Origin: Epithemia pelagica
Taxonomy: Eukaryota > Protista > Bacillariophyta
Direction of reading: 5' to 3'
Assembly: GCA_946965045.2 (NCBI GenBank)
Contig: OX337236.1
Span: forward strand, 2,046,001-2,110,000
DNA length: 64,000 nucleotides
Each line of letters begins with the position of its first letter. Position 1 is the first letter of the stretch. A model generated the notes under the pieces. The model was not told the origin of the DNA. It made no database searches and saw only the letters and a program-made list of their open reading frames with translations. The position numbers and the translations under genes were made by a program. This document shows positions 8,884-34,377 of the stretch, one piece after another.

Positions 8884-8925
8884 CTGCGGTATTGAGAGGA
8901 AGTAAACGAAGTGAACTACAGGAAT

Positions 8926-10842
8926 ATGGTAACGAATACTAGAGCTACGACGAAGAATCCACCGGAAACAAGCCCCGAAGGGCAAGGAACGGGAACCGCT
9001 GTCCCAGCGGGGGGAGCCAGTACGGATACGGGTAGTAGAAAGATGCCCGCGAGGAAAACAGGAACGGAACGGAACCCCAGTGGTGGTGGCACTGGTGGAA
9101 GTACTGGCGGCTCTAGTAATAGAGCCGGGAGTTCAAGTAGTGGAACGAGAGGAACAAGAAGCGCGTCGACACGGGGCGAAACCGCTGGAGGTGCACCCGC
9201 TGGCGGCGGAGACGGCGGCGCTGGAGGAGACGGCGGCGCTGGAGGAGGCGGTGGTGGTGGTGGACACGGCGATGATGGCGATGGTGGTGCACCGCCTCCC
9301 CCGATACCGCACCCGCCTGCAGGACCACCACCCGCGCTTTCGCAAGTCGGGCTGGTATTGACCGTGTGCGGGGCAAACGCAAACGAAATTCAAGTACTAG
9401 AAAACATAGAACGTCTTAATTCGTTACACGCCTTCGGACGAATGAGTAAGGATGATGTCACGTCCTTAGCTTCAAGGTTGGAGAAACGCCCTGGACCGAA
9501 TAATATAAGCCTTCCAACAAGCGTCGTAAAGAATCTTCAAGGGCTGTGTTTTTGGGCTTCCAAGGCCCGTAGACAGAGGCGTGACATCACTGCTGCCGAC
9601 TTCGACCAAGTGGTACTCTCGGATGCCCTCGACGAGATGGAAATTAAAGCAGAAACTGACAAGGCACCGGAAATTAAGCCCGAAATCCTCAAGGAAGAGA
9701 TATGGGAAGATTGGTCTCGCGAATTCCCTACCTATTTGTCCCACATAATTGGGAAGCAACAAGCCCCACTCGACTATGTAATTAGGCCTGAAATTCAACC
9801 TGGACACGTCTTTCAAACTCTCCGAGAGCAAGAATTGTACACTTACCCTCTGACTGGACCATTCTTTCACGAAGACAACAAGGCAGTGTACCGGTTGCTT
9901 AGTGACCGTGTACGCGACCAACCCGCAACGTGGATTCAACCCTACCAGGCATCCCAGAACGGTCGAGCGGCATGGTTAGCCTTGGTAGCACACTACGATG
10001 GCGGCGGCCAGAAAGAGAAACGTATCAACAAGGCTGAAGCTATCCTTAGTTCCGTATTTTATCACAACGAGAGAGCGTTTAGCTTCGACGCCTATTCTAC
10101 CAAGCTTCTACGTGCATTCCGCACGCTCGAAGAGACACCTAATCGACGCTCAAATGCAAATCAGGTCAAGATCTTGCTGGACAACATCCGAATTGCAACG
10201 GCCGAGTTTGCCGTCATAAAAAGCACCGTGCGAAGCAACTACAGGTCTAATTTAGATGACGCCATCGCCTATATCTCGCGTGAAGTCTCGGAACTGTACC
10301 CGAATGTCATCGGAGGCAGTGGCACACGTCCTGGCACTCGGCACCGGTTTATCTCGGAAACACACACGGGCGAACAGTCACCCGCTTCCCGTCCACGGAA
10401 CTTTGCGGGTCTCCAACAGCACAACGGTATTTTCACCTTCTACGGCGTTGACGTCACGGACGTCAGCCGCCGATTCACTTCCCAGGAGATGGCCACTCTT
10501 GGGCCCGCCGGACAGGCGTACATCCATCAGGAACGAGCTCGGCTCCGCAGCTCAGGTGATCGTGGCGGCCGTGGTGGTGGCCGCGGCCGTGGCTACGGGC
10601 GGGGACGTGGTGATTGGGGGCGCGGTGGTGATTGGGGGCGCGGTTCTGCTGCCAGTGGACGCGGCATTGGCAATGTCGACGTGAATGAGAATAATGAGCC
10701 ACCATCGGTCATCACAGACCCGTCTGTCGGCGGAGGTACCAATGGACATGCCGCTGGTAGTGCGGCGGGAACCGAGAATCCCGGTAGCAACGACCGTGGC
10801 AGCACCAACGGACGCAGATTCGGAGCCGGCGCATATGAGTGA
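8926..10842 (+). CDS. gag: Copia Gag
   Basis: First ORF after the PBS. Contains a copia capsid-like core (PLDYVIRP, GRAAWLAL..HYDG, FSFDAY) and an RGG-rich C-terminus instead of a CCHC knuckle. Ends in TGA. Confidence 0.9.
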   Translation: MVTNTRATTKNPPETSPEGQGTGTAVPAGGASTDTGSRKMPARKTGTERNPSGGGTGGSTGGSSNRAGSSSSGTRGTRSASTRGETAGGAPAGGGDGGAGGDGGAGGGGGGGGHGDDGDGGAPPPPIPHPPAGPPPALSQVGLVLTVCGANANEIQVLENIERLNSLHAFGRMSKDDVTSLASRLEKRPGPNNISLPTSVVKNLQGLCFWASKARRQRRDITAADFDQVVLSDALDEMEIKAETDKAPEIKPEILKEEIWEDWSREFPTYLSHIIGKQQAPLDYVIRPEIQPGHVFQTLREQELYTYPLTGPFFHEDNKAVYRLLSDRVRDQPATWIQPYQASQNGRAAWLALVAHYDGGGQKEKRINKAEAILSSVFYHNERAFSFDAYSTKLLRAFRTLEETPNRRSNANQVKILLDNIRIATAEFAVIKSTVRSNYRSNLDDAIAYISREVSELYPNVIGGSGTRPGTRHRFISETHTGEQSPASRPRNFAGLQQHNGIFTFYGVDVTDVSRRFTSQEMATLGPAGQAYIHQERARLRSSGDRGGRGGGRGRGYGRGRGDWGRGGDWGRGSAASGRGIGNVDVNENNEPPSVITDPSVGGGTNGHAAGSAAGTENPGSNDRGSTNGRRFGAGAYE

Positions 10843-13800
10843 CGCCAGGCATCAGTGGTTACTTGTGGGGCCAGGCGTGAGGTGACCACTGACAAGACGG
10901 TGGATTGTAGCATAGGAAACATGGGAATCAGCACTGGGAATGGGAATGATGTTGCATGCAACGAAATGGATACGATGGCAGACACCTCCTGCGCTGGTGT
11001 CAATTGGACACTCATGGAAACAACAGGAATGGAATGCAAGGTTAGTGACTTTATGGGACAACAGGTAGGAGGTCAATACGTACCGATAGCGACATGTGCC
11101 ACATGCATCCGAGAGAAAAGTACAGGAGTAGAATACATCTTAATCGGCCACCAAATGTTGTGGTTTGGTAGCGCACTAAAGAAGACTCTCTTGAATCAAA
11201 ATCAAATTCGGTATTGTGGGCATGTGGTTCGCGATGACCCCACAAGGAAGGAGGACGAAGGATTTGGCATCACGGCCGACGGGTTATATATTCCCTTCGA
11301 GATACAGGGGACGACTATTTACTTTGAGTCCCGCGCGCCTACCAAGCATGAAATTGAGACTTTACCTGCGGTGACTTTGACGCGTCAAGAGTTATGGGAC
11401 CCAAAAAGTGTGGATTTGAGCTTACACAATCGTAGCCCGCTAGATGATGCACGTGAAGAAATCTCACTCGAAATTGGCGCGGTCTCTAGCGCATGCGATC
11501 CTGTGGCCGTGGGGCAGCGACTCGACAGTCTCAGATCGGTCGGCGGTCTCGGCTCGGACCGTCACTCGACCGTTTCACCGGAAAATCTCAGCAAGAAATG
11601 GAAGATTGGGTTGGAAACCGCGCGGAAAACCCTCCGCGTCACCACCCAACAGGGTATCCGGACAGCTGTCACGCCTATAACGCGACGATATCGTGTTGAC
11701 AACTTGGCATTGCATCGGAATAGATTGAATAGTCGGTTCTATACGGATACGCTTTTCGCTCGGACGACATCACTTTCGGGACACAAATGTGCGCAAGTAT
11801 TCACGGACGGACAGTACACGGCCGTTTACCCACTCGCTTCCAAGGCACATGTCGGCCAAGCATTGGCCCGTTTTATTGATGAAGTTGGGGTTCCGGATGG
11901 TCTGACGGCGGATTTGGCCGGCGAGCAAACGGGGGCCGCCACGCAGTTCACGAAATTAAGCCGCTTCCATCGAATTGACCTCAAATGGGCCGAAAAGGGC
12001 ACGAGCAAGCAGAACCATCGTGCCGAGCGAGAGATCGGGCTTCTCAAACAACGATGGCATCGCCGCATGGTTGATTGTCGGGTTCCTCGTCGTCTGTGGG
12101 ATTATGGGTTGGTTCATGAGTCGGGTGTACTTAGTCGCGTCGCCCGGGGACATGACAGCCGCAGCGGCATAGAACGACTTACAGGCGAGACACCCGACAT
12201 CTCGGAGTGGATCGATTTCCAGTTTTTCGATATTGTCTGGTATCATGACAATACCAAAGCCGATACGTCGGATGAACATCGTCACCTTGGGTTCTGGCTG
12301 GGGATAGCGCATCGAATTGGCAGCGACCTTTGTTATTGGATTCTCACTAAAGCAGGAAAAGTGTTGGCAAGGACAACCGTGCAACATGTGACGGAGCAGG
12401 AACAGGCGAAACCAGCCATCACGGCAAAGATTCAAGAGTTCCGGTTGATTGTTGAGCAGCGCCTCGATGATACGAATTTTGTGGATTGGGAGAGCAAGGG
12501 ACCAGGATTTTTGGAGGACGTAGAGGAACCGGTCGAGGACGACACTCAAGTAAAAGGTGTAATTCCGACGGATGAAGAATACGGGAAGATGATCCAGGAA
12601 CCGAAGCCAGAAGCGGACGACCTTGGCGAGGAGTATGACAACTACTTGGGGGCGCAAATCCAGTTAGACGTTGGCGGTGAAACGTTGCTCGGGACGGTAG
12701 TGAAGAGGAAGAAAGGGTTAGATGGCAAACCAATCGGAACGAGGCACAAGAATCCACTCTTTGACAGTAGAGCTTACGATGTGAGTTTCCCTGGAGGTGT
12801 CATCCAGGAATACACCGCCAATGTCATTGCGGAGTCGCTGTATTCGCAGCTGGATGATCAAGGTCGACAGTTCGCAGTCATGAGCGAGATCATTGGGCAC
12901 AGGAAAAACGGGGACGCCGTTGGGAAGGACGACGGTTTCATAGTGTCCAAGAATGGGAACAAGGTACCAAGAAGAACGACGAAAGGGTGGGAAATTGCGA
13001 TTGAATGGAAGGATGGGAGTCAGTCATGGATACCGCTTCGGGAAGCAAAGGACGGATACCCCATAGAGTTAGCAGAATATATAGTCGCACAAGGGTTAGA
13101 GCAGGAACCGGCATTCCACTGGTGGGTGCCACGTGTCATGAATCACAAACGAAGGATCATAAACAAGGTCGTTGGGAAAAAGAAGAAGCAGAAGAAGTAT
13201 TGGAAACTGACACACAAGTATGGGGTGCGACTGCCACATTCCGTGGAAGAGGCGTTACAGTTTGACAAAGAGACGGGGACGACGTTCTGGCGGGACGCGA
13301 TCGCGAAGGAACTAGGAGTCGTGAAGGTGGCCTGGGAGGCTCGCGACGATCTCGTGCTTGCGGAGGTGCGAGCAGGGCGACAGCTAATAGGGTACACGGA
13401 AATCAAGTGCCACATGGTTTTCGATGTGAAGATGGACCTGACGAGAAAAGCCAGATTGGTGGCTGGTGGGCACATGACAGATGCCCCATCAAGTCTTACT
13501 TATTCGAGCGTTGTGAGTCGCGATTCAATTCGGATAGCGTTTCTAATCGCAGCCTTGAATGACCTAGACGTACTGGCTTGTGACATTGGAAATGCCTACC
13601 TTAATGCGCCATGTCGCGAGAAGATTTGGTTCCTAGGTGGAGCGGAAGTGGGTTCAGAGTTTCAAGGGAAGGTGTGCGTGATGACAAGAGCGCTTTACGG
13701 GCTAAAATCCTCGGGAGCCAGTTGGCGAGCGACGCTGGTGAGCACTCTCTATGACATGGGATATGTTGATACCAAGGCGGATCCATGTGTCCTACGACGG

Positions 13801-14997
13801 GAACGAAAGCGTGACAATGGGGAACCGTACTATGAGCTGATTTTAGTTTACGTTGATGACATCTTGCTTGTCAGCCACAAGCCTGAACCAGTGTTTGAGG
13901 AGATAGACCGCCATTACAAGATAAAGAAAGGGAGTATCGGACCACCGACCACGTACCTGGGGGCGCAGGTGTACCAACACAACCTGCCCACAGGGGGAAC
14001 GGCATGGGGTATGTCCAGCGAGAAGTACGTAAATAACGCGATCAAAGTGGTGGAGCAATTGTTGCTGGAAGACGGGGACGGAAAACATCTCAAAACAACT
14101 GCGCGGGTACCAATCGAAACTTCGTACAAGCCCGAGCTTGATACTTCTGAGGAGCTGGATGATAAGATGAGAGCTCGGTACCAACAGCTGATTGGTGTGT
14201 TGAGATGGGCGGTCGAGATTGGCCGCGTGGATATCTACTTGGAAGTTTCGATCATGTCACAGTATCTAGCAAATCCGCGGAAGGGACATCTTGAAGCTGT
14301 GTATTGCGTGTTTTCATTCCTCAAATCTCACCCGAAGCTCAAGATGGTATTCGACCCTGTCACAGTGAAGCTAGACGAGAGTTGTTTCGCGCAGACACCG
14401 ATCGAAGAGTGGAAAGAGTTTTACGGGGACGTAGCGGAAGAAGTACCAGCAGACATGCCGACACCACTTGGGAATCCGGTGGAAATCACGTGCTTCGTGG
14501 ACGCAGATCACGCTGGGAATGTCGTCACGCGTCGATCCCACACAGGCATATTGGTGTTCTTGCAGAACGCTCCGATCCTTTGGTTCTCAAAACGCCAAAA
14601 TACCGTGGAAACATCCAGTTTCGGGAGCGAATTCGTGGCGATGAGAATCGCCAAAGAGTTGATTGTTGGGATGCGGTATAAGTTGCGAATGTTCGGTGTT
14701 CCGGTTGTCGGTCCGGCCAATATTCTCTGTGACAATCGAGGCGTTGTCAAAAATACCAGCATACCTTCATCCATCCTGAGCAAGCGACATAACGCCATCA
14801 ACTATCATTCGGTCCGTGAAGCGGCAGCCGCAGGAATCGTCAGAGTCGGCAAGGAAGACACGGAGACCAACATTGCTGACTTGTTTACCAAGATGCTTCC
14901 CCAGAGTCGAAGAAATAACTTGATCTCACAGTTCACATATTCATCGGCATTTGGGGACCGGGGACCTCCCTCACAACCGCGGGGGACAACAAAGTGA
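10843..14997 (+). CDS. pol: Copia Pol (protease-integrase-RT-RNase H), in frame with gag behind a single TGA
   Basis: Protease EMDTMADTSCAG; integrase FYTDT..LTADLAGE..AEREI; RT KARLVAGGH, DIGNAYL, LYGLKSSG, YVDD; RNase H FVDADHAG, AEFV-like SEFVA, CDN, NIADLFTK. Confidence 0.95.
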   Translation, partial: RQASVVTCGARREVTTDKTVDCSIGNMGISTGNGNDVACNEMDTMADTSCAGVNWTLMETTGMECKVSDFMGQQVGGQYVPIATCATCIREKSTGVEYILIGHQMLWFGSALKKTLLNQNQIRYCGHVVRDDPTRKEDEGFGITADGLYIPFEIQGTTIYFESRAPTKHEIETLPAVTLTRQELWDPKSVDLSLHNRSPLDDAREEISLEIGAVSSACDPVAVGQRLDSLRSVGGLGSDRHSTVSPENLSKKWKIGLETARKTLRVTTQQGIRTAVTPITRRYRVDNLALHRNRLNSRFYTDTLFARTTSLSGHKCAQVFTDGQYTAVYPLASKAHVGQALARFIDEVGVPDGLTADLAGEQTGAATQFTKLSRFHRIDLKWAEKGTSKQNHRAEREIGLLKQRWHRRMVDCRVPRRLWDYGLVHESGVLSRVARGHDSRSGIERLTGETPDISEWIDFQFFDIVWYHDNTKADTSDEHRHLGFWLGIAHRIGSDLCYWILTKAGKVLARTTVQHVTEQEQAKPAITAKIQEFRLIVEQRLDDTNFVDWESKGPGFLEDVEEPVEDDTQVKGVIPTDEEYGKMIQEPKPEADDLGEEYDNYLGAQIQLDVGGETLLGTVVKRKKGLDGKPIGTRHKNPLFDSRAYDVSFPGGVIQEYTANVIAESLYSQLDDQGRQFAVMSEIIGHRKNGDAVGKDDGFIVSKNGNKVPRRTTKGWEIAIEWKDGSQSWIPLREAKDGYPIELAEYIVAQGLEQEPAFHWWVPRVMNHKRRIINKVVGKKKKQKKYWKLTHKYGVRLPHSVEEALQFDKETGTTFWRDAIAKELGVVKVAWEARDDLVLAEVRAGRQLIGYTEIKCHMVFDVKMDLTRKARLVAGGHMTDAPSSLTYSSVVSRDSIRIAFLIAALNDLDVLACDIGNAYLNAPCREKIWFLGGAEVGSEFQGKVCVMTRALYGLKSSGASWRATLVSTLYDMGYVDTKADPCVLRRERKRDNGEPYYELILVYVDDILLVSHKPEPVFEEIDRHYKIKKGSIGPPTTYLGAQVYQHNLPTGGTAWGMSSEKYVNNAIKVVEQLLLEDGDGKHLKTTARVPIETSYKPELDTSEELDDKMRARYQQLIGVLRWAVEIGRVDIYLEVSIMSQYLANPRKGHLEAVYCVFSFLKSHPKLKMVFDPVTVKLDESCFAQTPIEEWKEFYGDVAEEVPADMPTPLGNPVEITCFVDADHAGNVVTRRSHTGILVFLQNAPILWFSKRQNTVETSSFGSEFVAMRIAKELIVGMRYKLRMFGVPVVGPANILCDNRGVVKNTSIPSSILSKRHNAINYHSVREAAAAGIVRVGKEDTETNIADLFTKMLPQSRRNNLISQFTYSSAFGDRGPPSQPRGTTK

Positions 14998-15028
14998 ATT
15001 CTCGGGGTGAGCTACACTTTGCGGGGAC

Positions 15029-15187
15029 TGTCTTATTCGGGTCGTGGGAACAAAACCCGGATATGGGAAATCTTTGGGGGTTTTACCGTTTACATGGTTA
15101 CTATTTTGGGGATCCTTACATTAGTGGTTTAGCCTTATAATATCTTTTAAATTGCACGTTGAATAAGGTATCGACTGGAACAAGACA
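15029..15187 (+). repeat. 3' LTR (159 bp), preceded by a short purine tract GCGGGGAC
   Basis: Direct repeat of 8711-8869 with two substitutions (GGGAATTC/GGGAAATC and GTTAAAT/GTTGAAT). Confidence 0.97.
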
Positions 15188-15350
15188 CATACTCACCGCC
15201 CCCAAAAACGCGCCCCACAATTCTGTCGTGAGGTAGCTCTAGCTACTAAGGCTATCACTTCTAAAAAGCTAGAAGGAGTCATCATTGATGTTAGCATTAG
15301 CGTTTTGTTGCTCCTCTTCTAAGGTACCTTTCCAGGAGTCGATGAAACTG

Positions 15351-18266
15351 TTAAGTGGGACACTTTTCCTCAGTCACTGTTCCTTGGAGCACCAACTGCT
15401 TTTGTAATTGCTGCAGTTGTTCCCGAAGAACACGGTTTTCAACTTCTAGTTGTTTGGTTCGCTGACGTAGTTTTACATCTTCGTCCCCAAGAAAGCGCTC
15501 CTTGGACACAGCGTTGTTCTTATGTTGTTGCGATGGTTGACGGATGTTACCACCACCACTTCCAGGAAAGGACAAGGTGAGGCCGGCACACGAAATCTTG
15601 ACCACGCGTCCAGAATTGGTGCTGGGAGGCGGAACGGGAGATGCGGAACCACTCGGATTCTGGCTGTTCGTGTGAGAGTGAAAGCTTCCCATACTCCGAA
15701 CCAATGGATGTGGACGGTTGCTGCTGGTGAACGACTCAACATCATCGTACCAGTCATTGTCAGCGTCGTGGACGTTTCCCAATCGATGCTCTAGTCGATT
15801 CAAACAATCGTCAATCACCTTTTCCAAGCGGAGAGTATCTCGAATCGCATTCAAAAAGGGCCACGTGACAATTTCCCCATACTTGATGTAAACCTTCATA
15901 TCCTCTTCAGTTGGATTGGACAAGGTCCTCAACCCAAAGGTTTGTGTCGTCGTCAATCGGGGAACTATGGTCAAGTTTCCGTGATACTTTTGTTCAAAAG
16001 CCTTGCTCATGTCTTGGCCAAATATTTTCGGGAACAGGCCTAAACGACTCAGCTTGAGCGCTCGACTCCGAATATCCCATTCCACCAACAGCAAAAGTCG
16101 ACGGTAGAGGGACTTTTGATCAGGATGAAGTTCCTTATTCAATAACGGGACAATGTGAAAATTGGTTTGAGAGACAATAAAGTTGGAAACGGCAAACATG
16201 GTGGCAATGCGTTGAAAGGGAATGTCGGCTTGGACGGATCCGTCAATCCATTCTACACCATCGACTTCAAAGGGTTCCAGCTCACCCTGTGAGTTTTTGG
16301 TCATGAGACTAGTCGGGGCCATGACACCTGGCAAAGCACAAGAGGCAGCCACTGCACTTGCCAAGGTCACACGGGGGGTGGAGATGTGATTGAGCAACAA
16401 TCGTTGCAAGGCCGATTCGGCATTTGCCCGACTGGCAGACACTGAAATACACACATGTTTGCCAGTTCGTTCAAAGGCTTCTTCAAAGGTCATGTCACCG
16501 TAGTAAAACTTACAGGTACGTCGAAATTCATTAATATCAATCAATAGCTTGTGTTTGAGAAAATGAGCCACCATTTCCATGGCGGTAGGGAACCAACGAA
16601 TGTTTTGTTTCCCTTGCTCACCGGTCAAACCAAAATCGGTACTCACATGAGAAACGCAAACTTGCTGAAACAATTCTTCGGGTGTCTTGATGGCACACAT
16701 GGCCGCCGTAATGGAGCCGCCCGAAGTTCCCGAAATCACGGAAATGTCCTGATACAATTTGGATTCAATCAAGGCCTTCAAGACTCCTATATGGTACATG
16801 GCTTGTGCACCCCCTCCTGACAACATGAGAGCTGTTCGTCCCATATTGTGTTTCATTTTTCGAACGACGCGGACCCGTTCCGAAAGTTCTTCATTTTCCA
16901 GTTGTTCTTGAAGTGAGGAGGACCAAGAGGCTGCTTCGGAAGGAGGTGGTGAAGTTGGTGACAATGGGCGATCATGGTCCAGTGTTTGTGGTGTTGGTTG
17001 CTGTGCTGGAGGTGGCGGTGGTACAAAGGCTGGTGCATCGGCTAAGAAGTCCAATCCTTTTTGCACTTGATCATAAAAGGCCCGAATCACTTGCCGCGAT
17101 TTATTGGACAAGCCGTATCGTCCTGTATTGTTAATGGTCTGGGCATTGTCGACCAACAGGCTATCCAAGTGCAAGTGATTCCGTTTCATTACGGCAGACA
17201 ACAAATACTTGAGTCGGTTCCAGGCTTCTTCCAAATCCTTGTGGTGATTGTTTCGGTTGCCATGGTCGTCTCCATCCGTTTGACGATCCAAAGTGCCCGC
17301 GACTTGTTGTCGGCAGCGTTCAATCTCCCGTCGGGCATCCAAAAGCCTTTCCGTCGTGTTCACCAACAAGTAGCCTACACGTTCCCCCAATTCCGCTGAA
17401 ACCACTGGATCAACATTGTTGTTATTGCTATCTTCTTCAAAGGAGGATACATCCTGGGTTGTAGCCACGGTATGATCATCATCCTGTGCAGAACGAGACG
17501 AAAAGAAGCTCGTCAAACTTCCAAATGATTTGGATCGTCCCTTTCGACCAAGAGTGGTGAACGAAGAAGACATGGCTGTAGTGCTTCTAGATGCCGACGA
17601 CGAAGAAGAGGAAGCACGGGATGATGGTGAGCCATCGAAGGAAGTGGATCGGATCATTGCGTTTGCTTTTCTAGTTGGTGAAGCAGAGCATTCCAAACCT
17701 CCCTTATTGCTTTCTTGAGGCTCCTCCTCTTTGGGTTCAATCCGAATTTTCAAAAAGTTTTCATACGAGCCAGCGGCATCCAAACGTTGACGCCAGTACC
17801 GTCGTCGACTCATCTTGTGTTGTTTCTTGTTGATGGCTGACAGATTGGTCAAGAAAATGTGACAGGCCATGCTGTAGGACTTGAGCAAGAAAAAGCCACA
17901 CAAATCTCCCGTAATCATGACAAATTGATACCCCACATACACAAACTGTAAACAGCCGAGTAAAAAGCTCGTCACGAGCCAAATGATCCAGGTTGAGGCC
18001 GCCATAAAGGCGTAGAGGAGGGATACCAGGAGGGGCCAAAAGACGAGTGCCACAGCCAAGAGGGGAAGCAATGCATTGCGTGGAATGGCTGTCCACCACC
18101 ACCACCAAGAGCTGGATGTAACATCCCATTTCAAACCCTCGTGCAAGGCGTGAAACAGAGTGTTCAAGTCCGAAAGACGACTGGTACTCATCCATTCCAT
18201 GCGAGTCCACAAGGACGACAACGTTTGTTCCACCACAGTGAGCAATTCATCCAAAATTGGTGACAT
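15351..18266 (-). CDS. Patatin-domain triacylglycerol lipase (SDP1/TGL3-like)
   Basis: SGGGAQAMYHIG oxyanion loop, GTSGGS nucleophile elbow, ASCALPG and WIDGS, plus an N-terminal hydrophobic segment. Start placed at the ATG of MSPILDELL. Confidence 0.9.
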   Translation of the reverse strand: MSPILDELLTVVEQTLSSLWTRMEWMSTSRLSDLNTLFHALHEGLKWDVTSSSWWWWWTAIPRNALLPLLAVALVFWPLLVSLLYAFMAASTWIIWLVTSFLLGCLQFVYVGYQFVMITGDLCGFFLLKSYSMACHIFLTNLSAINKKQHKMSRRRYWRQRLDAAGSYENFLKIRIEPKEEEPQESNKGGLECSASPTRKANAMIRSTSFDGSPSSRASSSSSSASRSTTAMSSSFTTLGRKGRSKSFGSLTSFFSSRSAQDDDHTVATTQDVSSFEEDSNNNNVDPVVSAELGERVGYLLVNTTERLLDARREIERCRQQVAGTLDRQTDGDDHGNRNNHHKDLEEAWNRLKYLLSAVMKRNHLHLDSLLVDNAQTINNTGRYGLSNKSRQVIRAFYDQVQKGLDFLADAPAFVPPPPPAQQPTPQTLDHDRPLSPTSPPPSEAASWSSSLQEQLENEELSERVRVVRKMKHNMGRTALMLSGGGAQAMYHIGVLKALIESKLYQDISVISGTSGGSITAAMCAIKTPEELFQQVCVSHVSTDFGLTGEQGKQNIRWFPTAMEMVAHFLKHKLLIDINEFRRTCKFYYGDMTFEEAFERTGKHVCISVSASRANAESALQRLLLNHISTPRVTLASAVAASCALPGVMAPTSLMTKNSQGELEPFEVDGVEWIDGSVQADIPFQRIATMFAVSNFIVSQTNFHIVPLLNKELHPDQKSLYRRLLLLVEWDIRSRALKLSRLGLFPKIFGQDMSKAFEQKYHGNLTIVPRLTTTQTFGLRTLSNPTEEDMKVYIKYGEIVTWPFLNAIRDTLRLEKVIDDCLNRLEHRLGNVHDADNDWYDDVESFTSSNRPHPLVRSMGSFHSHTNSQNPSGSASPVPPPSTNSGRVVKISCAGLTLSFPGSGGGNIRQPSQQHKNNAVSKERFLGDEDVKLRQRTKQLEVENRVLREQLQQLQKQLVLQGTVTEEKCPT

Positions 18267-21079: not shown

Positions 21080-21302
21080 AGCATGCATTGAACCAACCAA
21101 TCGAAGGCATGATTCCAACTTTTGTTTCTGTTTTAGTAAGTAGGGTCTATCGAATAGAACTACGACAATTAGACTACCTAAAGCATTTACAACTTCTCCA
21201 TTTATGATTCCCACAAAAACGTTCTTTTTGCCACCAATTTGATTGCGAAGTTTACCCTAATCTGGTAGCAAGGTCGCCTGCACTTTACGTTCTCAAGTTT
21301 TA

Positions 21303-24333: not shown

Positions 24334-25172
24334 TCTTCTGCATGTTGTCGCGGTATTATTCCATGCAAAGTTGCCTTAAGGCTATTATACATGTGAGATG
24401 CTTTTCTGGACATCGTTGTTGTTTGTTATTGCTCCTGATAGTAGAAAAGGCCAAGATCCATGAGGCCCCGAAGAGGCTGCAGCCGCGTAGGACATTGAAA
24501 ACGACGAGTTGCCAGAAGCAGTAGAGAAATAATCTTGTTAGATCGATTGAAGAAAGGCCCAAGTATTTTATCCTAGTAGTCGATTGTCAAAAATTCCGAT
24601 TACAACATGTAGATAATCCTAAAAGGAACGCGTAGAGCCCCAAAAATAGCACTCCCCAATCGCATGTCCGGGTCATCTACCCATCGACCCGAATGAAACC
24701 CGCAAAGGGTAGAGCACCCTTTGCCATCCATGTTTGATGGGTGGTCCGCCCAAACCGAATGCAGAAGCATTTACCGACTCTGTATTTTATCATGAGGATA
24801 CTACGAGTATGAGAGTCTGGATCTAGTAGGTCGGGGGTGGGAGGATGTCGTTCTAAATCCAGCAAAAAAGAAGGAGAAGCCACGGACATTACTCGTATTT
24901 ACATAGCGTCTTGCTTCTTTTTCACTCGTGACATCTCCCTAGTCAAACCATAAATAAACTACCATGTAGAGTTTCCTATGGATGATAAAAGTTCCCAAAG
25001 TCGTCTTCTGGTGGATGGCGGATACCCGCCACGCCATGCAGAGAGTTCGAGACTGTTTTGTCCGCCTCATCCCACAAAATCGCGGGACCAAACAAACATC
25101 CACCCTGTACTTTTAGCGCAGTCCTCATATTTCTGTTTAGAAGGAGAAATACAGGACCCGACATTAACAGCA

Positions 25173-26720
25173 ATGTCGAAACAAATCAGAACCAGTCCAG
25201 CAAGAGGGGTATCTCTACAGAAGAGAGGAACTACTGTAGACAGGAGTCGTCACACCCCTGTATGTGGTGGCCCTCTCGGAACAATCGCGATCTTACGGTT
25301 CCCTCCGCTATGGTTGCTTTGCTGGATGGTGGTCCTAGCGTGGTGCCTCCTACAGCTCGTGTTTCTGGAACAACTTCTCGTTCTGGAGCCGTCCAGCTTG
25401 GTTCCAGAAAAGACTCCATACAACAACAATCAGCAACATCCCGAAAGCAGCATAAAAAGCCAAACTAGTCGTTTCGTTCCAACCTTATCCACCGCAAGCA
25501 TTTCTCAACCTCCAACAACAACAACAACAACATGGGGAGACTATTCACAGCCAGAGTTTGTTCCTACTCATCGTTCCATCCATCTCAAACCTCAAGAAGG
25601 TACACAAAGTCGCAACAACACGACAGTCGCCACTACCACCATGCACGAAAAATCAAACAGTTCCAACCTTGCGATTGATCATGTCCATGCTACAGAATTT
25701 CCATACGCCTTAAGCTGTCCCGGTCAAGTGTTGCATCCCCGACAGAACAATTACACAGTAGTGTTGGGATACCACGTTGGCATGTTGCGTAATTGGCGTT
25801 CCATTGTTCACGATCAATTGCAAACCTTGTACCAATGTGGATTGGGACCGGCGCTTTCCGAGTGGTTTGTTTCGTACGCCATGTCACGGCATTTGCAAGA
25901 GCATCATCAACCCGAAAAAGAACCAACACGCCGCCGTCGTCAACGGCTTGTCAAGGAATTGCAAACCTTGTTGATTCCGCCTCCATCAGTACCACAAAGT
26001 GTCACACCACCGCAACTCTTTGCTAGTAGAGGAATTCCGTGGGAAGGATCCATGCTGAATCAATTGATTCAGTATTGTCAAGAGATCCCACAAGACAAGA
26101 AGGCAACCACTCTGGTCTTTTATTGGCACACCAAGGGTTCCTCCCGATGGCATCAAGATTGGCGTGCCCGTTGGCAAGAACCATATACGTATGGACCCGT
26201 CCTGTATTGGCGCAAATATCTGGAATACTTTGTCCTAGAACGACCAGCCCATTGCATTCATCGCCTGATGCGAGAGGGAGCACAAACTTGTGGAGTTGCA
26301 CACCAAGCCCAGTCGGGGATCTATGCTGGCAATATATGGGCCGCCACATGCTCGTATCTCACACAAATACCCAAGGTGCAAATTCGAACATTCAACCAAC
26401 CAGTCATGTCCAATCAAACTCACTCCCCGTCCTCTCAAAGTTACACCGCCGCCAAGTCTTGGGAGAGTGGGTATTTTGATGCGGAACAAGCCTTTGGTAT
26501 TCCTCAGCGACAAGCAAGGCAGCAACAACAAGAGCTGTTGAAGCGAAACCATACTCGTCCGAGTAGAAGTAGCAGGAACGATCTTTCCCATATCTATGTA
26601 TCATTGCACCAACCCAAACAAGCGCAACGACGAAAGCGACAAGCCGGTTTCTACGCACATGCGTTGAAACCAGAGGAATATCGTTCCGCCATTGCGGATT
26701 GGGGACCACTGTCCGTGTAG
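25173..26720 (+). CDS. Type II membrane protein, glycosyltransferase-like (HTKG motif family)
   Basis: One N-terminal TM helix and an S/T-rich stem, then a globular domain with YHVGM..NW, FYWHTKG, YWRKYLEYF and GNIWAATCSY. Confidence 0.55.
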   Translation: MSKQIRTSPARGVSLQKRGTTVDRSRHTPVCGGPLGTIAILRFPPLWLLCWMVVLAWCLLQLVFLEQLLVLEPSSLVPEKTPYNNNQQHPESSIKSQTSRFVPTLSTASISQPPTTTTTTWGDYSQPEFVPTHRSIHLKPQEGTQSRNNTTVATTTMHEKSNSSNLAIDHVHATEFPYALSCPGQVLHPRQNNYTVVLGYHVGMLRNWRSIVHDQLQTLYQCGLGPALSEWFVSYAMSRHLQEHHQPEKEPTRRRRQRLVKELQTLLIPPPSVPQSVTPPQLFASRGIPWEGSMLNQLIQYCQEIPQDKKATTLVFYWHTKGSSRWHQDWRARWQEPYTYGPVLYWRKYLEYFVLERPAHCIHRLMREGAQTCGVAHQAQSGIYAGNIWAATCSYLTQIPKVQIRTFNQPVMSNQTHSPSSQSYTAAKSWESGYFDAEQAFGIPQRQARQQQQELLKRNHTRPSRSSRNDLSHIYVSLHQPKQAQRRKRQAGFYAHALKPEEYRSAIADWGPLSV

Positions 26721-27059
26721 TAGGAAACAACGCCAAGACGGTTTGATCAGGTTTGTTGGCGGATCGTATCGGATAACTAGGAAGGCAGATTGGCATCTAG
26801 GCAAAGCAAGAGACTTGTAAAAAAGTGCTCGCGACAGGGTGTCTTGGTTATAGAGGTTGTTTTGAGAAACATCTACCAATCTCCATGGCATGCAGTGTTC
26901 CTGCGCTTCTGATCGATTTGACATTCGAGGAATTTTTTGTTCTTGTTTCGTTTTACGTCTTCTTTCTCTCTGTCTCTGTCTCGATGTTTTCGTAAGGGGT
27001 GTCACGACCTGTAGGCAAGCTCCATCTTGTTTCCATATAGCGTGTCTTCTTGTTCTCTC

Positions 27060-27509
27060 TTAATCTTTGAGTGTATTGATAATGGTCGCCACCACACCTC
27101 CAATTCCACCATCGCCCAAATTGGCCAAGACCAGGAAATTGAGGGCGATCAATCCAAAGCCAATCGCCGTCAAGGTGACCGAGTCGACATCATCGACCAA
27201 ATCGACACGAACCTTTTGTGGCTCGCCCAAAGGACGAGGAGACGGACGATCAAAACCCAAGGATTGAGCTGATGGCGGTTTCGGGTCGTTATCGTCTGGA
27301 TTGTTGGAGGAAGCCAAGGGTCTACACGACCATGGCGACTGTTTTGGTTGGGTCAGAGAAGTGCCACCAAATCCAATTTTCCTGGATGGTGTTTTCGATC
27401 GGGTCACAGTAAAGGCTGCCACCGATTGAAACGGTTGATCCAGTGAATGGAACAGAAAGGAAAGCAAGAGGCAAGCAAGCAGGCTTTGAAGAAATGCCCT
27501 CATCGTCAT
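27060..27509 (-). CDS. Small plastid-targeted membrane protein of unknown function
   Basis: Signal peptide ending VAA-F (ASAFAP-like), an S/T/R-rich transit region, and a C-terminal TM helix followed by NLGDGGIGG. Confidence 0.65.
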   Translation of the reverse strand: MTMRAFLQSLLACLLLSFLFHSLDQPFQSVAAFTVTRSKTPSRKIGFGGTSLTQPKQSPWSCRPLASSNNPDDNDPKPPSAQSLGFDRPSPRPLGEPQKVRVDLVDDVDSVTLTAIGFGLIALNFLVLANLGDGGIGGVVATIINTLKD

Positions 27510-27779
27510 GGTCGTTTGGAAACCAACAGGAGCTTTGGAAGCGGAAGCGGAAACAACGCGTACGTGTTCAAATGAATCGCTTTCCAGTCGCGCCATAACT
27601 CTCTATCCAATATCCAATACCGAGCTACGGTATTAGACTTGGAAAAACTGCATTCGTCTGAATGAAACTCTGTTGACATTTACAATATCCAAGTCACTCT
27701 ATAGTATATCGTGAATAGAACCTACTGTGCTTGTTTGCTCTCTACTCTCCCATTCCCATGGACCACTCTTGGAGTTGTC

Positions 27780-29741
27780 TTATCGAGACGCCTGTTCTGG
27801 GTTTGGTCGACGACGCATGTTTTGCCACCACGGCTTGTTATTATTTTTGCTCTCATTGGCTTCCATCAAGAGGTTTGGGCCATGCATTGTGGCAATGTGT
27901 GGCAAGGCTGCTTCCAGGAAATGTCGCAAGACGGCAGTGCGATGATATTGTGCCTCCCCTACCACATTGTACCGTAAAAAGGTAGCTCGAGTCGCGGCAT
28001 CCACCACGTTCGTGCCCCATACACTCCAGGAAGAAGTGGCGTCATCGTCGACGGCTTGGACCGTCTCGTCCAAGACTCCACCCCCAGGACTGGTCCAACT
28101 GCTCGGACTGGTACGGTCCAATACAAAGGTTCCCACAAGAGCGGCCAATACCAAGGACCAAACAAGACCTCGTTGCAGGTTGGTGGTCCCTTGGGTTTGA
28201 TACAAGGCGGGTAGATTCAAAATCAAAAGTCCTATCCAAAACAAGCATTCCCCCAATGTCATCAAGGAACTATCATCGAGTCCAAGCTCGTCATGAATTG
28301 AGGCCAATTTCGAGAGCAACGAGGAAATCGAGGCCGTCGTGCTGTCGGTTGTCAACCACAAGGGCATCAAAACAAGGCCTTGCAAACAAAAACCAGCCAA
28401 ACAAACCAAAAGTCCCAGTAATTCGGCTCCACCCTGCTGTTCTTCATCGTCGTCATCTTTGCTGTCTCTTTTGTTGTTGGTGCTACCCTCCTTGTTCTGG
28501 ACTTGGGTTTCTTTGGTCCTGCTGCGTTGTTGGGTATGGGTAACGAGCGTCGCCCAATGTGGCGCGGTCCACACCAACATCCACAGGGTACTGGCCATCT
28601 CATAAACTACCAAGGTTTCAATGGGAACGGCATGGCCGTGAAAGGGATGACGTCGACGATGATGCAGGGACCATGCCACGGAATGATGGGAGGAAGAATC
28701 AGTCCCCCACAAGGATTCGAATCTGGATACTACCAACTCTTGAAAGAGTGCGGGGTATTCCAAGCCGCATTGGACTCCCAAGGTCTTGATACCGTAGAGG
28801 AATAAACACAAACTGCTGTACCAAGTGCAGGGTGGCAACGACGACTGGTCTCCTAGAACAAGGGGTGGGAGTGCTACCAAAACCAGTGTGAGTCCACCAC
28901 CCATAACTTCCAGGGGGAACAAGGATTGATCGTATAGGGCCCAGATCAAGCCAAAGAGCGTCACACATCCCCATACGGCAAGACTGGTCGAAAGAAAGGC
29001 CGAGGACGGGTCCAACGTGTTTGGATTGTCTCTGCGATTGGCCGTCCGTCGAGCCCGAGAATCGTCCTCGAGAATAACATCCAGGGACCGATCCTTTGTT
29101 TCGTCAGACATAATTCCGGAAGCAAATGGAGTTGTCGTCGCAACTGGTTTCTTGGTTTGGAATGATTCTCCTCTTGTCCCATTGGTTGCCTCTGTGTTTG
29201 ATTTGATGACCTGTTCCGTTGGAGTCATCGTCTTGATGCTCGGTTGGTGAATGTCGTCATCGTTGTTGTCTGGACTGTTGTTTGGTTGCTCATTCACGTT
29301 TGAGTGGTCGTTGTTGCGGTTGACGCTTCCGTGTTGCTCCGTCGTCGTCTGTGGTCTCAAGAGGGGTAGTAACCGGGGAGCAGCCTTGACAAGAGATTTC
29401 ATGAGGAGTCGATCTTCCAAGGGCACCACCGGTTCCACGACGGTCGATGAATGTGTTTCCTGTGCGACCGAATGAATGGTAGAAATGGTGATGAGTGAAA
29501 TATTGTCATCCTCGTCGTCGTCGTCATCATCATCGAAACTTTGATCTAACGAATGATTGAGATGATTATCCTCATCGTCGTCACTGTGGCCGCCGCCGCC
29601 TTGTTTCTTGACATCTTCTCCCAATAAGGCAAATTTGCCATTTTGGTAATGATGTTCGTGATGATACCCTGGACGTTGTTCGGCCGCGTCCGAAGCAATC
29701 GTCAAGTGCAAATTGGTTCCTCTCGATATATTCAACGACAT
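27780..29741 (-). CDS. Multi-pass membrane protein, possibly DUF1295/steroid 5-alpha-reductase-like
   Basis: Acidic low-complexity N-terminus and several TM segments. LGECLFWIG resembles the GE..FW.G motif of DUF1295. Confidence 0.45.
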   Translation of the reverse strand: MSLNISRGTNLHLTIASDAAEQRPGYHHEHHYQNGKFALLGEDVKKQGGGGHSDDDEDNHLNHSLDQSFDDDDDDDEDDNISLITISTIHSVAQETHSSTVVEPVVPLEDRLLMKSLVKAAPRLLPLLRPQTTTEQHGSVNRNNDHSNVNEQPNNSPDNNDDDIHQPSIKTMTPTEQVIKSNTEATNGTRGESFQTKKPVATTTPFASGIMSDETKDRSLDVILEDDSRARRTANRRDNPNTLDPSSAFLSTSLAVWGCVTLFGLIWALYDQSLFPLEVMGGGLTLVLVALPPLVLGDQSSLPPCTWYSSLCLFLYGIKTLGVQCGLEYPALFQELVVSRFESLWGTDSSSHHSVAWSLHHRRRHPFHGHAVPIETLVVYEMASTLWMLVWTAPHWATLVTHTQQRSRTKETQVQNKEGSTNNKRDSKDDDDEEQQGGAELLGLLVCLAGFCLQGLVLMPLWLTTDSTTASISSLLSKLASIHDELGLDDSSLMTLGECLFWIGLLILNLPALYQTQGTTNLQRGLVWSLVLAALVGTFVLDRTSPSSWTSPGGGVLDETVQAVDDDATSSWSVWGTNVVDAATRATFLRYNVVGEAQYHRTAVLRHFLEAALPHIATMHGPNLLMEANESKNNNKPWWQNMRRRPNPEQASR

Positions 29742-30523
29742 GGTCGGCGATGATGATGCGAATACCCCACAACAAATAATACCGGAGGACCCGACAATGT
29801 CTCGGACCAAACAAGGAGGAGTTCTTTTGGAACCAGAACAGCAGAGGGGTTGCAGTTCTTATTCACTAGTCCCCTGTTTCAGTACTCTTGGTCTTTGAGT
29901 TGCTTTAGTTCTTTTTCTTCTCCAGCTTGATGATAGAGATGAATGAGGGACAATGAGCGAAACCGAGAAAAGGTATTGTATTGTACAGAGTGTGATGGTG
30001 ATGACTCAATGTACACCCAAGTTAAGATGGGACCAAGGAACATGGTCAGGCCACGTCATGAAGTCTGAGCATTGGCGTTGGAGTGCAAGTCGGGCGGTCC
30101 ACCCAAAAGAAGAGCCGGCCTCGCTGTCACACAAAGAATGAGGCAGAACGGGCGTGCAACTCGGAAGAGGAAGTTCCAAAAAGAACATGTGCATCCCATC
30201 TACTGCGACAAAGCCTCTTCCATTCCATATCTCAAAGTGGACTGCCTCCAAATAGAGGATCGTCCGATTCAAGAGGCATGGGCACTCTTGAATCAAACAA
30301 CAATGCGCCAACAATGGATCCCTAATGGAGCGCGACATGCGATCCATGACAAACAAGCAAAGACGCAGCAAACAAAACAAGAGGGACACGGAGAGCTCAC
30401 TCTTTGGGTTTTCTACGGTTCGTCGGCGAAGGTCTGATCCCCTTTGGCGCCGTTCTTGATTTCTAAAGAGTTGAAACTCCAACTTTCTCTGCTCACTTCG
30501 CTCTCTTACTTACTCCTTCTACC

Positions 30524-32979
30524 ATGTCGGTTCCTCCTCCTCCTCCTCCTGCACAGGATGCTGATACGCTCCTCTCTGCGCTCGTCGCTTCGGCCTCCGT
30601 GGCTAACACCCCTGCGGCTGGGGCCGCCCGTCCTTCTACGGCGGCTCTGGGGGGGGATCGCGGTCAAATCTCCTTTGCTGCTGACCCTCCCACGGATGAG
30701 ATGATGGTTCAAGGCACGGAAACCGCATTGTTTCCTGAGAGCACCATGGACCCTACTGTCCTTGGACGCTCTACCGGTGGTAGTAAGTTTGGTGTCGTGG
30801 CACTTCGCGCAAGCGAATGTGCAGACAAGTTGTTGTGTTTGGGTCTCAAGCGCGGCGGAGCAACCTTTTGCATCGACCCCAAGTGCGCTAAAGCCGGGGA
30901 CCATGGAACTGGTCTAGCTCCCGTCGACTTGGGACCCTCAGGAGGATTGTTCATTACCAAGAACCCTGCCTCTGCCTTTTGCACTCCGGTTATCTCGTTG
31001 AGTGAGATCTCTCAGGAGACACTGGACCAAGTCCAGCATGAAAAACACACTATGGAAGAATGGACGAAGAAATTCGTTGCTATGAAACGTCTTAATCAAG
31101 TTAAGAAAGAAGGTCACCTGGATGCCAGTCTGAAGGAAACAGAGCATAAAATCTCCAAGGCTGACTCCCTCCGTACCCCGTTTACACTCAAGAAAGCTAC
31201 CTCTACCTCCACCTCCTTTGTCGTCGAGAATTTCTCTCCTCACCACAAGATTTTGGACGGGGATCTGCAGGATGTGATTCGGAAGATTACTGTTGACTCC
31301 TCCTTGGTTCCGATAACTCTTCGCGAAATCGAAGACTCGGTGATGGAAGCAGGAGAAGTGATCCAGACTTTGTCCTTGGAACAACAAGCCATTTCGCGTC
31401 AAAACAGCACAGCCGTTGAAGCTCTAGGAATCAAATTTGATAAACTGTCCATGGAAATTGGACCTCGAGAGGACTTGCCGGACGAGTACCAAGCCCCGAC
31501 CCTCTGGGGAATCATCTCTTCGATGATTCGTTCCATTCAAGAATCCTCTCCCTCGACGACTGAATCTCACCAACGTGCTGTGGATAGTCGCCTTGCCGCG
31601 GTTGAGTCCTCTATTGCTACTTTCTTCTCAACCATCCAAGGCCAAGTCTCTTCGAAGTTGTCCTCGACCCAAGTTGAGACTCGTAACTCGGTAGACAAGC
31701 TTCGAAACCAATTCGTGCAAGGCTTCAAAGGAATCCTCGATCGCTTGTCGGCCCTTGAATCCAACACGACGCTCACCAACCGTATCTTGACCATTGAAAA
31801 CAAGATGTCGTCCCATGAAATTTTACTTAGCCAACTGGGAACCTCCCCGCAGATGTTCGGTGCAACACAGACGACATCCAACACAGGAGCACCAGCCCTT
31901 CAAAACAAAGTCACTGCTCTTGAAGGGGAAATCGCGAATTGAGGACCCTCTTGGGAGATGCCAATTTGGAAATGCAACGTCTCAAGGGCAAGGTCGACAC
32001 TTCCACCATCAAGTTCGGAAATCTTGGCGTAGCAACGGTTGATGACTGCAAAGCCTGGGTGGCCCTCAAGTTCGGGTCAAGAGCGTACGGTCTTTTGTTT
32101 GATCTCAACTTGGTGCTTGAATGGTGTGCCCCGCAGGAGAATGGGGATGTTTTATCCATGCTGACTACCATGGAAAAACGACACAAGATGCAGATCGCGA
32201 CAACAAATGAAGCTCGAGCGATTTATGCGATGAAGAATGAATTTCCCCAGCTCTTGTACAAAGATTTCCCTGGCACCGGGCGGGACCCTTCGTTTCTCAC
32301 TGCGATGAAAGAGTACTCGGATTGGGAGTCGCCCGAGCCGGGAGTTCGTGACCGAATCCTGAATGGTCTAGGCAACATGAATTCTATGTTTGGAGAACAA
32401 ATTGCCACAACGATGGCCAATGAACCTGAAGCCCGTTCCTTAGCCTTATCTATGCTATCTGTTTCGGTGGGTTGTTGCCGTGAATTGGTAACCTATTTTG
32501 ATGAAACCATGAATGAACTCACTATCAAGTCGAAGTTTACTACCCGCAAGGCCTTCAGTTTGGTTACCCAAGTGGTCAGGCGCTTCTTCATGGACTTATA
32601 CAAGGTTAGGGCTCAAGTCTACTTGTCTCTTTCGACCACTGATAGTGCTGGCCAGTGCGCATGGATACTTTACGGCGTTCTTCGTACCCACGATGTTATG
32701 AGCGATTACGTCAAAGCTCGTTTCAAGAACCATCCGTCCGTTTCAAGCGAATACATTCGCTTCCTTTCCACCAACTCGGGCTTCGAGTCCCTCAAGACGC
32801 TAGAAGATCAAGTGGAATCCTTGAAGCGTACCTCTGCTCAGTTGGTCAAAGATGTTACCTCGGCCAAGAAAGCTTCCGACACGGCCAGCAGCACTGTGGA
32901 CAGTGTCAAAAAGGATGTGACCGAATTGAAGAAACAAGCCCAGCGTCGTGGAGGATCTACCAACGGTGACAAGAAGTGA
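30524..32979 (+). pseudogene. Gag-like ORF1 of the YR retrotransposon, split by a 1-nt frameshift at ~31939-31942
   Basis: Cys/His cluster CADKLLC...FCIDPKC..AGDH and coiled-coil regions. ORFs 30524..31942 and 31939..32979 abut (EIAN*/LRTLLG). Confidence 0.65.
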
Positions 32980-34377
32980 CGGTGTGCCGCGCCTAAACTA
33001 GATGAAAACGTTTCGTATGTTGACTCTGGTTTAGACGCTGGTAGTATTGCATCATCTTTAAGCAGTCTGGGACCTGGCTCTCCTGGTGGTGTTGGTGCCA
33101 AACGTCCAGCCTCACCACCGCCTAGCATTGTCGTTTCGGTCAAACGCTCCAGGCATCGTCCTACTGATCGCGGATCACGGATCTTCCGAAGTGATTTGTC
33201 GTGTCTTATCCTTGGTCAAACATCCCTTTCGTGGGGACTTGGTCTCAGTCTCGGGGACTGGCACGGCATTTACATGTTGGCTGCTGAGTATGAAGCACGA
33301 CGAGAGAACCCCTTTTGGCGTGCCGTTTTGCTTCATTTTGGGGATAAGCTCCACTTAGTCCCAAGCATCGATGTTGTTCTGGGACGAGGGATCATTTCGG
33401 TTGTACTGTTGGAAGGCGATCCTGATTACCTCGCGTCTTCCTTGCTTTTCGTCCCTCCGAGTTGGCCTGTTTTATTGTTGCTTCCTTCGGGATGGAGTCG
33501 CCCCACCCTTCCTCAAGTCCAATGGTTGTCGGTCACCCATCGTCAATGTGGTGGTGTCACGACCGCACGTGTCCACGTTGGGCGTCGTGGTATACCTCCG
33601 TTGTTTTTCCATGTCACCACGCGGCGCACGCTGGGTTCGATCATCTCGCATTCAATCCGTCCTTCCCCGTGTGGGGCGCCCACTCTACCTGATTCTTATT
33701 ACTCCTGTGACGATCAGTTGCACACCCGTGCTCTTTTCAAGTCTATTCGGTTGTCCACACACTTTTCAAAGACGGGTTGGGGTTGTCGTCCGCTTACTGA
33801 TGAAGAAATTGGAACGGCGTTCGATTTGCCGCTTTGGGTCATCGATGATACGATTGCTTTTCGTTGGTGGTGCTCCCACATGATTCATCCGCGAGTTACT
33901 CCCATCAAGATCCCAGCTTTAGTGTTGAATTCCGCTTTACCACACTTGGACCCTGTTCTGATTCACCACACTAGTACCGCCGGCAACAAACATGGTGGAC
34001 CCTCATCCCCGTTTCGTCCCTGCAAACGCGGCCGTTGGTTGACCCCTCTTTCGGAAACTGTCCAAGATGGCGTCCTGGGTACCACCTTTTCCTTCTTGCC
34101 CGCCTTTCTCCCTCATGACGCGTGGCTCGACGATTCCAAGATTGCGGATATTGCGGTTAAGGCAGACGACGCCCTGGCCCCTTTTTGGATTTGGGATGGG
34201 CGGATTCGGGGCATCTACCCTTGGATCACAGATTCGGCGCTTTCAGGCTTCCGCTTGTTGGCTTTGCTTTGGTGGCGTCGCTCCTTGGTGCGGAGTTTCT
34301 TGGCTTATTTACGCTTGCGGTTTGGTGCGAATTGGCCAGCCTTAGTGGCCTCTTCACCACTCCAGGGGGGGGGGGGG
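32980..34377 (+). CDS. Degenerate C5-cytosine DNA methyltransferase-like domain, in frame with gag behind TGA
   Basis: The frame is open from 32980. Segments resembling DNMT motifs occur in canonical order: SWGLGLSLG (after I), LAAEYE (II), VVLLEGDPD (IV, no Cys), THRQCGGVTTARVHVGRR (VIII), RTLGSII, RPLTDEEIGTAFDLP (IX). Confidence 0.5.

Follow-up and report, generated by a model that had tools for sequence, protein, structure and literature searches.

Candidate UGA readthrough signals at the gag ends of a Ty1/copia and a tyrosine-recombinase retrotransposon in the diatom Epithemia pelagica

How does a retroelement obtain Pol when its gag is closed by a stop codon? This question is raised by two elements in a stretch of 64,000 nucleotides (nt) of the genome of the diatom Epithemia pelagica (assembly GCA_946965045.2, contig OX337236.1, positions 2,046,001 to 2,110,000 of the forward strand), which is referred to here as the window and to which all coordinates without a locus name refer. 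In a Ty1/copia long terminal repeat (LTR) retrotransposon and in an element assigned, partly from predicted protein folds, to the tyrosine-recombinase (YR) retrotransposons, gag ends at an in-frame TGA and the same frame continues as pol. Programmed readthrough of this UGA at both gag ends, yielding a Gag-Pol fusion, is the best reading of the two junctions and, judged from sequence, a probable one. The features of the junctions are as follows.

8926-10842, + strand: copia gag open reading frame (ORF), beginning with the first ATG and closed by the TGA, by ORF reading.
10840-10842, + strand: copia gag UGA stop, context TGA-CGC, kept in 11 of 11 family copies and in family B.
10843-10851, + strand: copia spacer of 9 nt, with 8 of 9 bases shared by families A and B.
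10852-10892, + strand: copia stem-loop with arms 10852-10864 and 10880-10892 and a 15-nt loop, from the minimum free energy (MFE) fold and a paired-cell test.
10843-14997, + strand: copia pol ORF in the gag frame, with a protease motif and RVT_2 (PF07727, E 1e-18).
30524-32979, + strand: YR gag, with a frameshift near 31938 in the window copy and a single ORF of 837 codons in intact copies.
32977-32979, + strand: YR gag UGA stop, context TGA-CGG, present in 15 of 15 F1/F2 copies, seven sub-lineages, a relative at 31% identity and 28 metagenomic lineages.
32980-32988, + strand: YR spacer of 9 nt, invariant in length in sub-lineages F1-F7, the last 3-4 bases of which can lengthen the stem.
32989-33038, + strand: YR stem-loop with arms 32989-33002 and 33025-33038 and a variable 22-nt loop, from folding, a pairing test, RNAalifold and synonymous suppression.
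32980-38298, + strand: YR pol (N-terminal domain, reverse transcriptase (RT), RNase H, Cys-rich segment and recombinase), broken in the window copy at 34365-34377, 35931 and 37111.

An earlier note on this DNA had described gag-TGA-CG, exactly 9 nt, a stem of 13-14 positions and an open frame thereafter, and ORF reading and folding confirmed this geometry at both sites. The copia TGA closes a frame of 643 codons that is open for 1384 codons more, to 14997, and the YR frame of the window copy is open for 502 codons after its TGA. The copia stem consists of 13 bp, including G-U pairs, and has an MFE of -18.9 kcal/mol (z -2.65 against shuffled sequences, a comparison that the note had proposed), and the YR helix spans 14 positions with one C-A mismatch in the window copy (-18.6 kcal/mol, z -4.75), and -24.3 kcal/mol is reached if the helix is lengthened by 4 bp into the spacer. 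Compared with windows of the same length from its own element, each hairpin falls in the ~1% of highest stability (the top 0.9% in the case of copia). As the note had also held, no sequence is common to the two hairpins.

In the simplest case, such stops might be inactivating mutations in dead copies, and the YR copy of the window does carry other inactivating lesions, namely the gag frameshift at ~31938, a shift in the poly-G tract 34365-34377 and TAA codons at 35931 and 37111, although its junction is intact. Copies were compared in the 60.5-Mb source genome, with a second ENA assembly (ERZ21939226) added for the YR sub-lineages. The TGA was kept in all 11 copies of the copia family and in all 15 YR copies of sub-lineages F1/F2, whereas the other YR lesions (the frameshift, 13 G instead of 8 and the two TAA codons) are specific to the window copy and missing from the rest. 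Among public runs, no RNA run was found to contain this stretch, and three contig sets that contain it (probably DNA) keep the TGA and the stem and have an extra T after 31938 and a shorter G run. Identity is 99-100% among many copies at separate loci and 99% between the two copia LTRs, which indicates that recently transposed masters carried the stop. The earlier note had reasoned that a copy-specific stop would speak against readthrough; the stops proved universal among copies and are thus not damage. Decay, refuted by the comparison of copies and lineages, is left with a negligible probability.

Among the YR sub-lineages F1-F7, the pol N-termini of which are down to 50% identical, gag, TGA and pol share one frame and a 9-nt spacer always precedes the core helix; nine further YR loci of this genome (51-55% identity) stand outside this comparison. 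A conservation profile of six sub-lineages revealed the junction as a local island, not as the top peak. An in-frame TGA, without a clear stem, was also found in a relative contig family at 31% identity. On the copia side, family B (70% amino acid identity) retains the TGA, 8 of the 9 spacer bases and the stem, and relatives from Fragilaria crotonensis, a Tara marine contig and a metagenome contig (L064) display gag-TGA-C-pol in frame. The Gag C-terminal motif RGS.NG..FG.GAY, common to copia and its Fragilaria crotonensis and metagenome relatives, lies directly before the stop. Most of the best 120 copia pol homologues are ORFs of 1340-1440 residues that cover 96-98% of the query, which suggests that the boundary occupies the same place in many relatives. 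The arrangement is missing from copia relatives L061, with pol in another frame, L067 and L068, the latter two having several stops. No recognisable junction was found in L069 (Fragilaria).

Splicing of some transcripts could remove the stop and fuse gag to pol, and the window stops do lie in G-TGA-CG, which is like a 5' splice site. However, YR sub-lineages F3, F4 and F7, copia family B and the copia relatives L062-L064 lack the GT at the stop, and coding conservation reaches the stop from both sides. Furthermore, the DNA contigs lack a joint flanking the stop, the lone joint (one contig, one run) skipping ~2 kb (32351 to 34424). As the GT is not conserved, the stop was rejected as a splice donor, and splicing in general is considered very unlikely.

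The stems themselves were assessed by covariation. Over 14 distinct junctions, 91% of the cells of the YR core stem are paired, as opposed to 22-39% in slid controls, and RNAalifold independently yields the same helix. Two compensatory pairs replace G:C by A:U in six rows and C:G by U:A in four, some of the changes at synonymous third positions; conservation is confined to the arms, the loop being variable, and each lineage can add 3-4 bp into the spacer using different bases. The stems of F5-F7 fold with z values of -3.3 to -5.8. For copia, 93% of cells are paired in families A and B versus 21-50% in slid controls, five of seven differing pairs are preserved (one by a double change), there are four wobble changes, and in copy L007 a U-G pair has become C-G. 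Covariation in these stems, located at +9, supports the structures without proving them.

Selection at the RNA level is also indicated by the coding sequence. Over codons 1-25 after the YR stop, the proportion of synonymous differences (pS) is 0.29-0.41 and the ratio of non-synonymous to synonymous change (dN/dS) is near or above 1, whereas from codon 26 onwards pS is 0.7-0.87 and dN/dS 0.1-0.3; this switch points to RNA constraint over the stem and protein constraint beyond it. It was considered whether the hairpins instead serve another RNA function (packaging, dimerisation or stability) or reflect protein constraint, with Pol arising solely from unstimulated, basal leakiness of UGA. The arms do partly encode conserved residues, for example LDA.S, and the UGA is kept in the distant relatives L070 and L062-L064, where local stems are weak or absent (z -1.5 to -2.2). 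Such an origin is nevertheless improbable, as a spacer of invariably 9 nt is common to the seven YR sub-lineages and the two copia families, pS is lowered and dN/dS is ~1 over the YR stem, compensatory changes occur at third positions, and in the 28 metagenomic lineages described below the enrichment of structure falls exactly on the stop.

The same coding analysis bears on whether internal initiation, reinitiation or a separate transcript (subgenomic or from an internal promoter) supplies Pol apart from Gag, leaving the UGA as an ordinary terminator. An internal promoter is present at the gag-pol junction of Tca2 of Candida albicans (PMC2194720), and the copia pol has Met codons 5-27 codons 3' of the stop, before the protease motif, so that internal initiation is possible there, a point that counts against readthrough. 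In the YR element, by contrast, the first AUG after the stop is at codon 80-98 (F1, F2a, F3 and F4) and conserved motifs precede it; since the AUG-less codons are under purifying selection at the protein level, they have to be reached by ribosomes arriving from gag. Independent production of Pol also leaves unexplained the use of UGA only in 28+ lineages and the conserved structures at the stop, and is judged unlikely.

To widen the YR comparison, metagenome contigs were scanned with a recombinase alignment, which retrieved 80 loci; a scan with a pol N-terminal alignment found no relatives. In 36 contigs an ORF of pol size starts inside the contig, and in 34 of these it follows a TGA, the ORFs of the two TAA cases being shortened on both sides. 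A same-frame gag of at least 466 codons lies directly upstream of pol in 25 contigs. The 31 clean junctions, which form 28 clusters below 80% identity, all have TGA, and as synonymous sites are saturated between lineages this exclusivity implies selection for UGA itself. In the 28 lineages, the fold of the 60 nt that begin with the stop is more stable than those of in-frame control windows taken from the same pol (mean z -0.94, p 2e-5), and ten of the lineages fall in the lowest decile. The enrichment appears only with a window beginning at the stop: for the 75 nt after the stop (stop excluded) no enrichment was seen (median percentile 0.32).

Exclusive use of UGA next to a stem, which recalls selenocysteine redefinition elements, could mean that the codon is decoded as selenocysteine. 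No selenocysteine insertion sequence (SECIS) was found, as Rfam (SECIS included) gave no family for the two window elements at E ≤ 1 or for 14 related loci at the gathering score; moreover, a Gag-Pol linker offers no catalytic rationale for this residue and the neighbouring residues are not conserved. Selenocysteine is thus regarded as an extremely improbable explanation.

In a marine sub-clade of eight contigs (L103, L109, L114, L116, L117, L120, L121 and L124; e.g. L114:2630-2716), the junction forms a strongly covarying H-type pseudoknot, a geometry unlike that of the +9 stem, in which the UGA lies within the 5' strand of a hairpin, the loop of which pairs with a downstream segment. In this structure 95.8% of cells are paired versus 30-46% in slid controls, with compensatory changes in 10 of 21 pairs, a count somewhat biased because the third helix was picked by eye from the same eight sequences. 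A helix that contains the stop would have to be unwound by the time the UGA is decoded, and therefore could not be a classical downstream roadblock. That the whole marine/diatom-associated YR clade depends on UGA-specific recoding via lineage-specific RNA structures appears doubtful at present; if true, the marine geometry could mark another type of stimulator (refolding or a trans-factor) or an undescribed UGA-specific decoding route.

Several further observations weigh against programmed readthrough at the window junctions. When the copia hairpin is folded with its GC-rich flanks (61 nt), z is only -0.5, and the copia stem comparison draws on only two families. The +9 stems contain few compensatory events, one or two independent ones per helix being the probable number, and distant YR and copia relatives have weak stems or none. 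The YR pol terminator (38296-38301) is itself TGA-CGA, so that a UGA-CG context alone does not mark the gag stop. The +4 base of the 31 metagenomic YR junctions is G in 13, T in 11, C in four and A in three; UGA-C is thus a feature of the lineages of this genome and not of the wider YR clade. Finally, Tca2, a Ty1/copia element with gag-UGA-pol and a putative pseudoknot, has a junction that alone was insufficient for readthrough in Saccharomyces cerevisiae (PMC2194720). The diatom copia resembles Tca2 in type, in-frame UGA and predicted 3' structure (PMC2194720) and differs from it in the comparative support for its stem. The evidence for copia is thinner than that for the YR element. As to the survey of stops, +4 bases, spacers and folding suggested in the earlier note, the 28 clusters have UGA exclusively and structure at the stop, but a general +4 C does not emerge; likewise, its formula of UGA-CG and exactly 9 nt holds for the window elements and, with respect to the spacer, for F1-F7 and copia families A and B, but fails in the wider clade with its mixed +4 bases, pseudoknot sub-clade and weak or missing stems.

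If programmed readthrough does operate, most ribosomes would terminate at the UGA to release Gag, and a minority would decode it as a sense codon to produce the Gag-Pol fusion. Termination efficiency would be lowered by the leaky UGA-C context, and a stable stem has its core 9 nt 3' of the stop and its base possibly only 4-6 nt 3'. With the UGA in the A site, the stem would be positioned at the entrance of the mRNA channel, favouring a near-cognate tRNA over the release factor. What the sequences show is the anatomy, its conservation, the covariation and the constraint at the RNA and protein levels; the occurrence of readthrough, its efficiency and the amino acid inserted (Trp, Arg or Cys would be expected) are inferred.

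This arrangement closely parallels the type II readthrough signals of alphaviruses, tobra-, peclu-, furo- and pomoviruses and coltiviruses, which consist of UGA-CGG/CUA and an extended 3' stem (Firth et al. 2011, PMC3159437); those studied experimentally have UGA-CGG or CGC, a spacer of 7-9 nt and a stem of 10-12+ bp (PMC3159437). Shared features are the UGA with +4 C (the YR element has CGG, and copia shares CGC with potato mop-top virus) and stems of 13-14 positions after 9 nt, with conserved arms, a variable loop and compensatory substitutions (PMC3159437). UGA-CGG/CUA is thus present in the YR element, with the CGC of copia a listed variant, and lacking in most metagenomic YR relatives, and a covarying 3' stem was found. 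In contrast to the viral signals, the carriers are chromosomal diatom retrotransposons rather than RNA viruses; the loops are 15-22 nt and not ~100-150 nt as in several viruses, and the xxA-stop-CGx-xxx-xxG motif is absent from the window elements. Murine leukaemia virus similarly sets a same-frame Gag:Gag-Pol ratio with the same stimulator spacing (8 nt in the virus; PMC3159437), although it combines UAG-G with a compact pseudoknot instead of UGA-C with a simple stem-loop. The convergence proposed in the earlier note therefore survives in that both elements have the known type II geometry, and not as a new mechanism: because the mRNA channel of the ribosome imposes the spacing, the two would have converged on a known solution. 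In a Tara marine copia relative (L062:163-175), the sequence is TGA-CAA-TTA, the six bases after the stop being the tobamovirus-type CAA-UUA readthrough context.

The earlier note had further claimed that two different retroelement orders are involved, and the anatomy of the elements upholds this: LTRs and RVT_2 on the one hand, RT/RNase H, a Cre-like recombinase and split direct repeats on the other. The remaining features of the copia element are as follows.

8711-15187, + strand: copia element, a Ty1/copia LTR retrotransposon.
8711-8869, + strand: copia 5' LTR of 159 bp with TG...CA ends, a direct repeat 99% identical to 15029-15187.
15029-15187, + strand: copia 3' LTR of 159 bp, direct repeat of the 5' LTR.

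In its pol, RVT_2 (PF07727) was identified at E 1e-18 with a protease-like motif upstream, near the N-terminus, and PF00665 and PF07727 are both present in homologues. With LTRs and RVT_2 preceded by protease, the element is Ty1/copia. The CoDi elements of diatoms (Maumus et al. 2009, PMC2806351) are likewise Ty1/copia; the passages of that paper drawn on here contain no account of stop identity, context, RNA structure or a readthrough proposal. In other copia families of this genome (L016, L017, L020-L025 and L027-L029), the gag-pol frame is uninterrupted across the whole 3.1-kb locus, so that one host contains both fused and UGA-split designs. In a copia relative at 58% pol identity (L061:1467-7275), pol is shifted to +1 with respect to the gag frame and overlaps gag by 287 nt, owing perhaps to a frameshift design or to an error in the contig.

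The remaining features of the YR element are as follows.

30005-38751, + strand: Ngaro/PAT-like tyrosine-recombinase retrotransposon, terminal A2-B2 missing in the window copy, limits taken from six other copies.
30005-30487, + strand: split direct repeat A, first 483 bp, the second A being seen in copy L051.
34600-36500, + strand: RT and RNase H region (approximate limits), from YVDD and DAS motifs and structure-model matches.
37117-38298, + strand: tyrosine recombinase domain, from an AlphaFold model, Foldseek and invariant residues.
38327-38751, + strand: split direct repeat B, last 425 bp, the second B being seen in copy L051.

No LTRs were found flanking 30005-38751, and no rve integrase domain was matched by Pfam in the YR ORFs. 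In copy L051, the element's 3' end is followed by a second A (483 bp) and a second B (425 bp), giving A1-[ORFs]-B1A2B2, and the window copy stops at B1. The only Pfam match in the YR ORFs was sub-threshold (RVT_1, E 0.008), and sequence and profile searches of the PDB with the recombinase and pol returned no match; as these searches are nearly blind to the YR proteins, their folds were predicted. The recombinase ORF was modelled by AlphaFold with a confidence score (pLDDT) of 82, and its top Foldseek matches are all Cre (probability 1.0, TM 0.58-0.64), followed by XerH, lambda integrase and Flp. Residues R202, K236, R331/R334, W357 and Y376 are invariant or nearly so in 54 homologues. The model of the central part of pol (the homologous segment of L058) matches the RTs of cauliflower mosaic virus, Moloney murine leukaemia virus, HIV-1 and Ty3 at E 1e-11 to 1e-13. 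The combination of two folds, RT/RNase H and Cre-like, with split direct repeats thus leads, on modelled structures, to the assignment of the element as a genuine tyrosine-recombinase retrotransposon, of a different order from copia.

The element resembles the Ngaro/PAT pattern A1-[ORFs]-B1A2B2 (PMC8547959, PMC3266345), as far as the passages used from these two papers describe it, in its split direct repeats, the order gag, RT/RNase H and terminal tyrosine recombinase, and the lack of LTRs; it differs from that description in having gag and pol in one frame across a single UGA, in its large size (~8.7 kb) and in a pol N-terminal domain of ~500 residues without an assigned family. Readthrough is not mentioned in the same passages.

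In intact YR copies, pol continues through the poly-G tract, as in L056 with its shorter G run, and L050 has 1320 uninterrupted codons. The tract (34365-34377) consists of 7, 8, 13 or 21 G among copies (13 in the window) and sets the reading frame, only the 8-G copy staying open; this variation could be homopolymer assembly error or real slippage. The first ~470 residues of pol (32980-34377) have no Pfam match, yet contain motifs strongly conserved across lineages. A Cys-rich, zinc-finger-like segment (36574-37113) adjoins the recombinase on its 5' side and ends, in the window copy, at the copy-specific TAA 37111. Copy L056 carries an extra A repeat upstream (L056:5181-5700), and 24 nt further on the element restarts at the equivalent of window position 30411, a partial duplication of the 5' end.

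As for novelty, a full-text literature search, outside the scope of which many subscription papers lie, yielded no paper that describes readthrough of a stop codon for tyrosine-recombinase retrotransposons or for diatom elements, in line with the earlier note's belief that it is undescribed for the former. Readthrough at these junctions would extend this Gag:Pol dosing device to tyrosine-recombinase retrotransposons, the expression strategy of which has barely been studied, and likewise to diatoms, for which no description of a recoding signal came up in that search. Annotation should then treat gag and pol of these elements neither as separate genes nor as pseudogenes. The cassettes are short (~65 nt) and might become tunable expression elements in transformable diatoms, and the invariant UGA of 28+ lineages, accompanied by several covarying structures, would constitute a natural experiment on the leakiness of stop codons.

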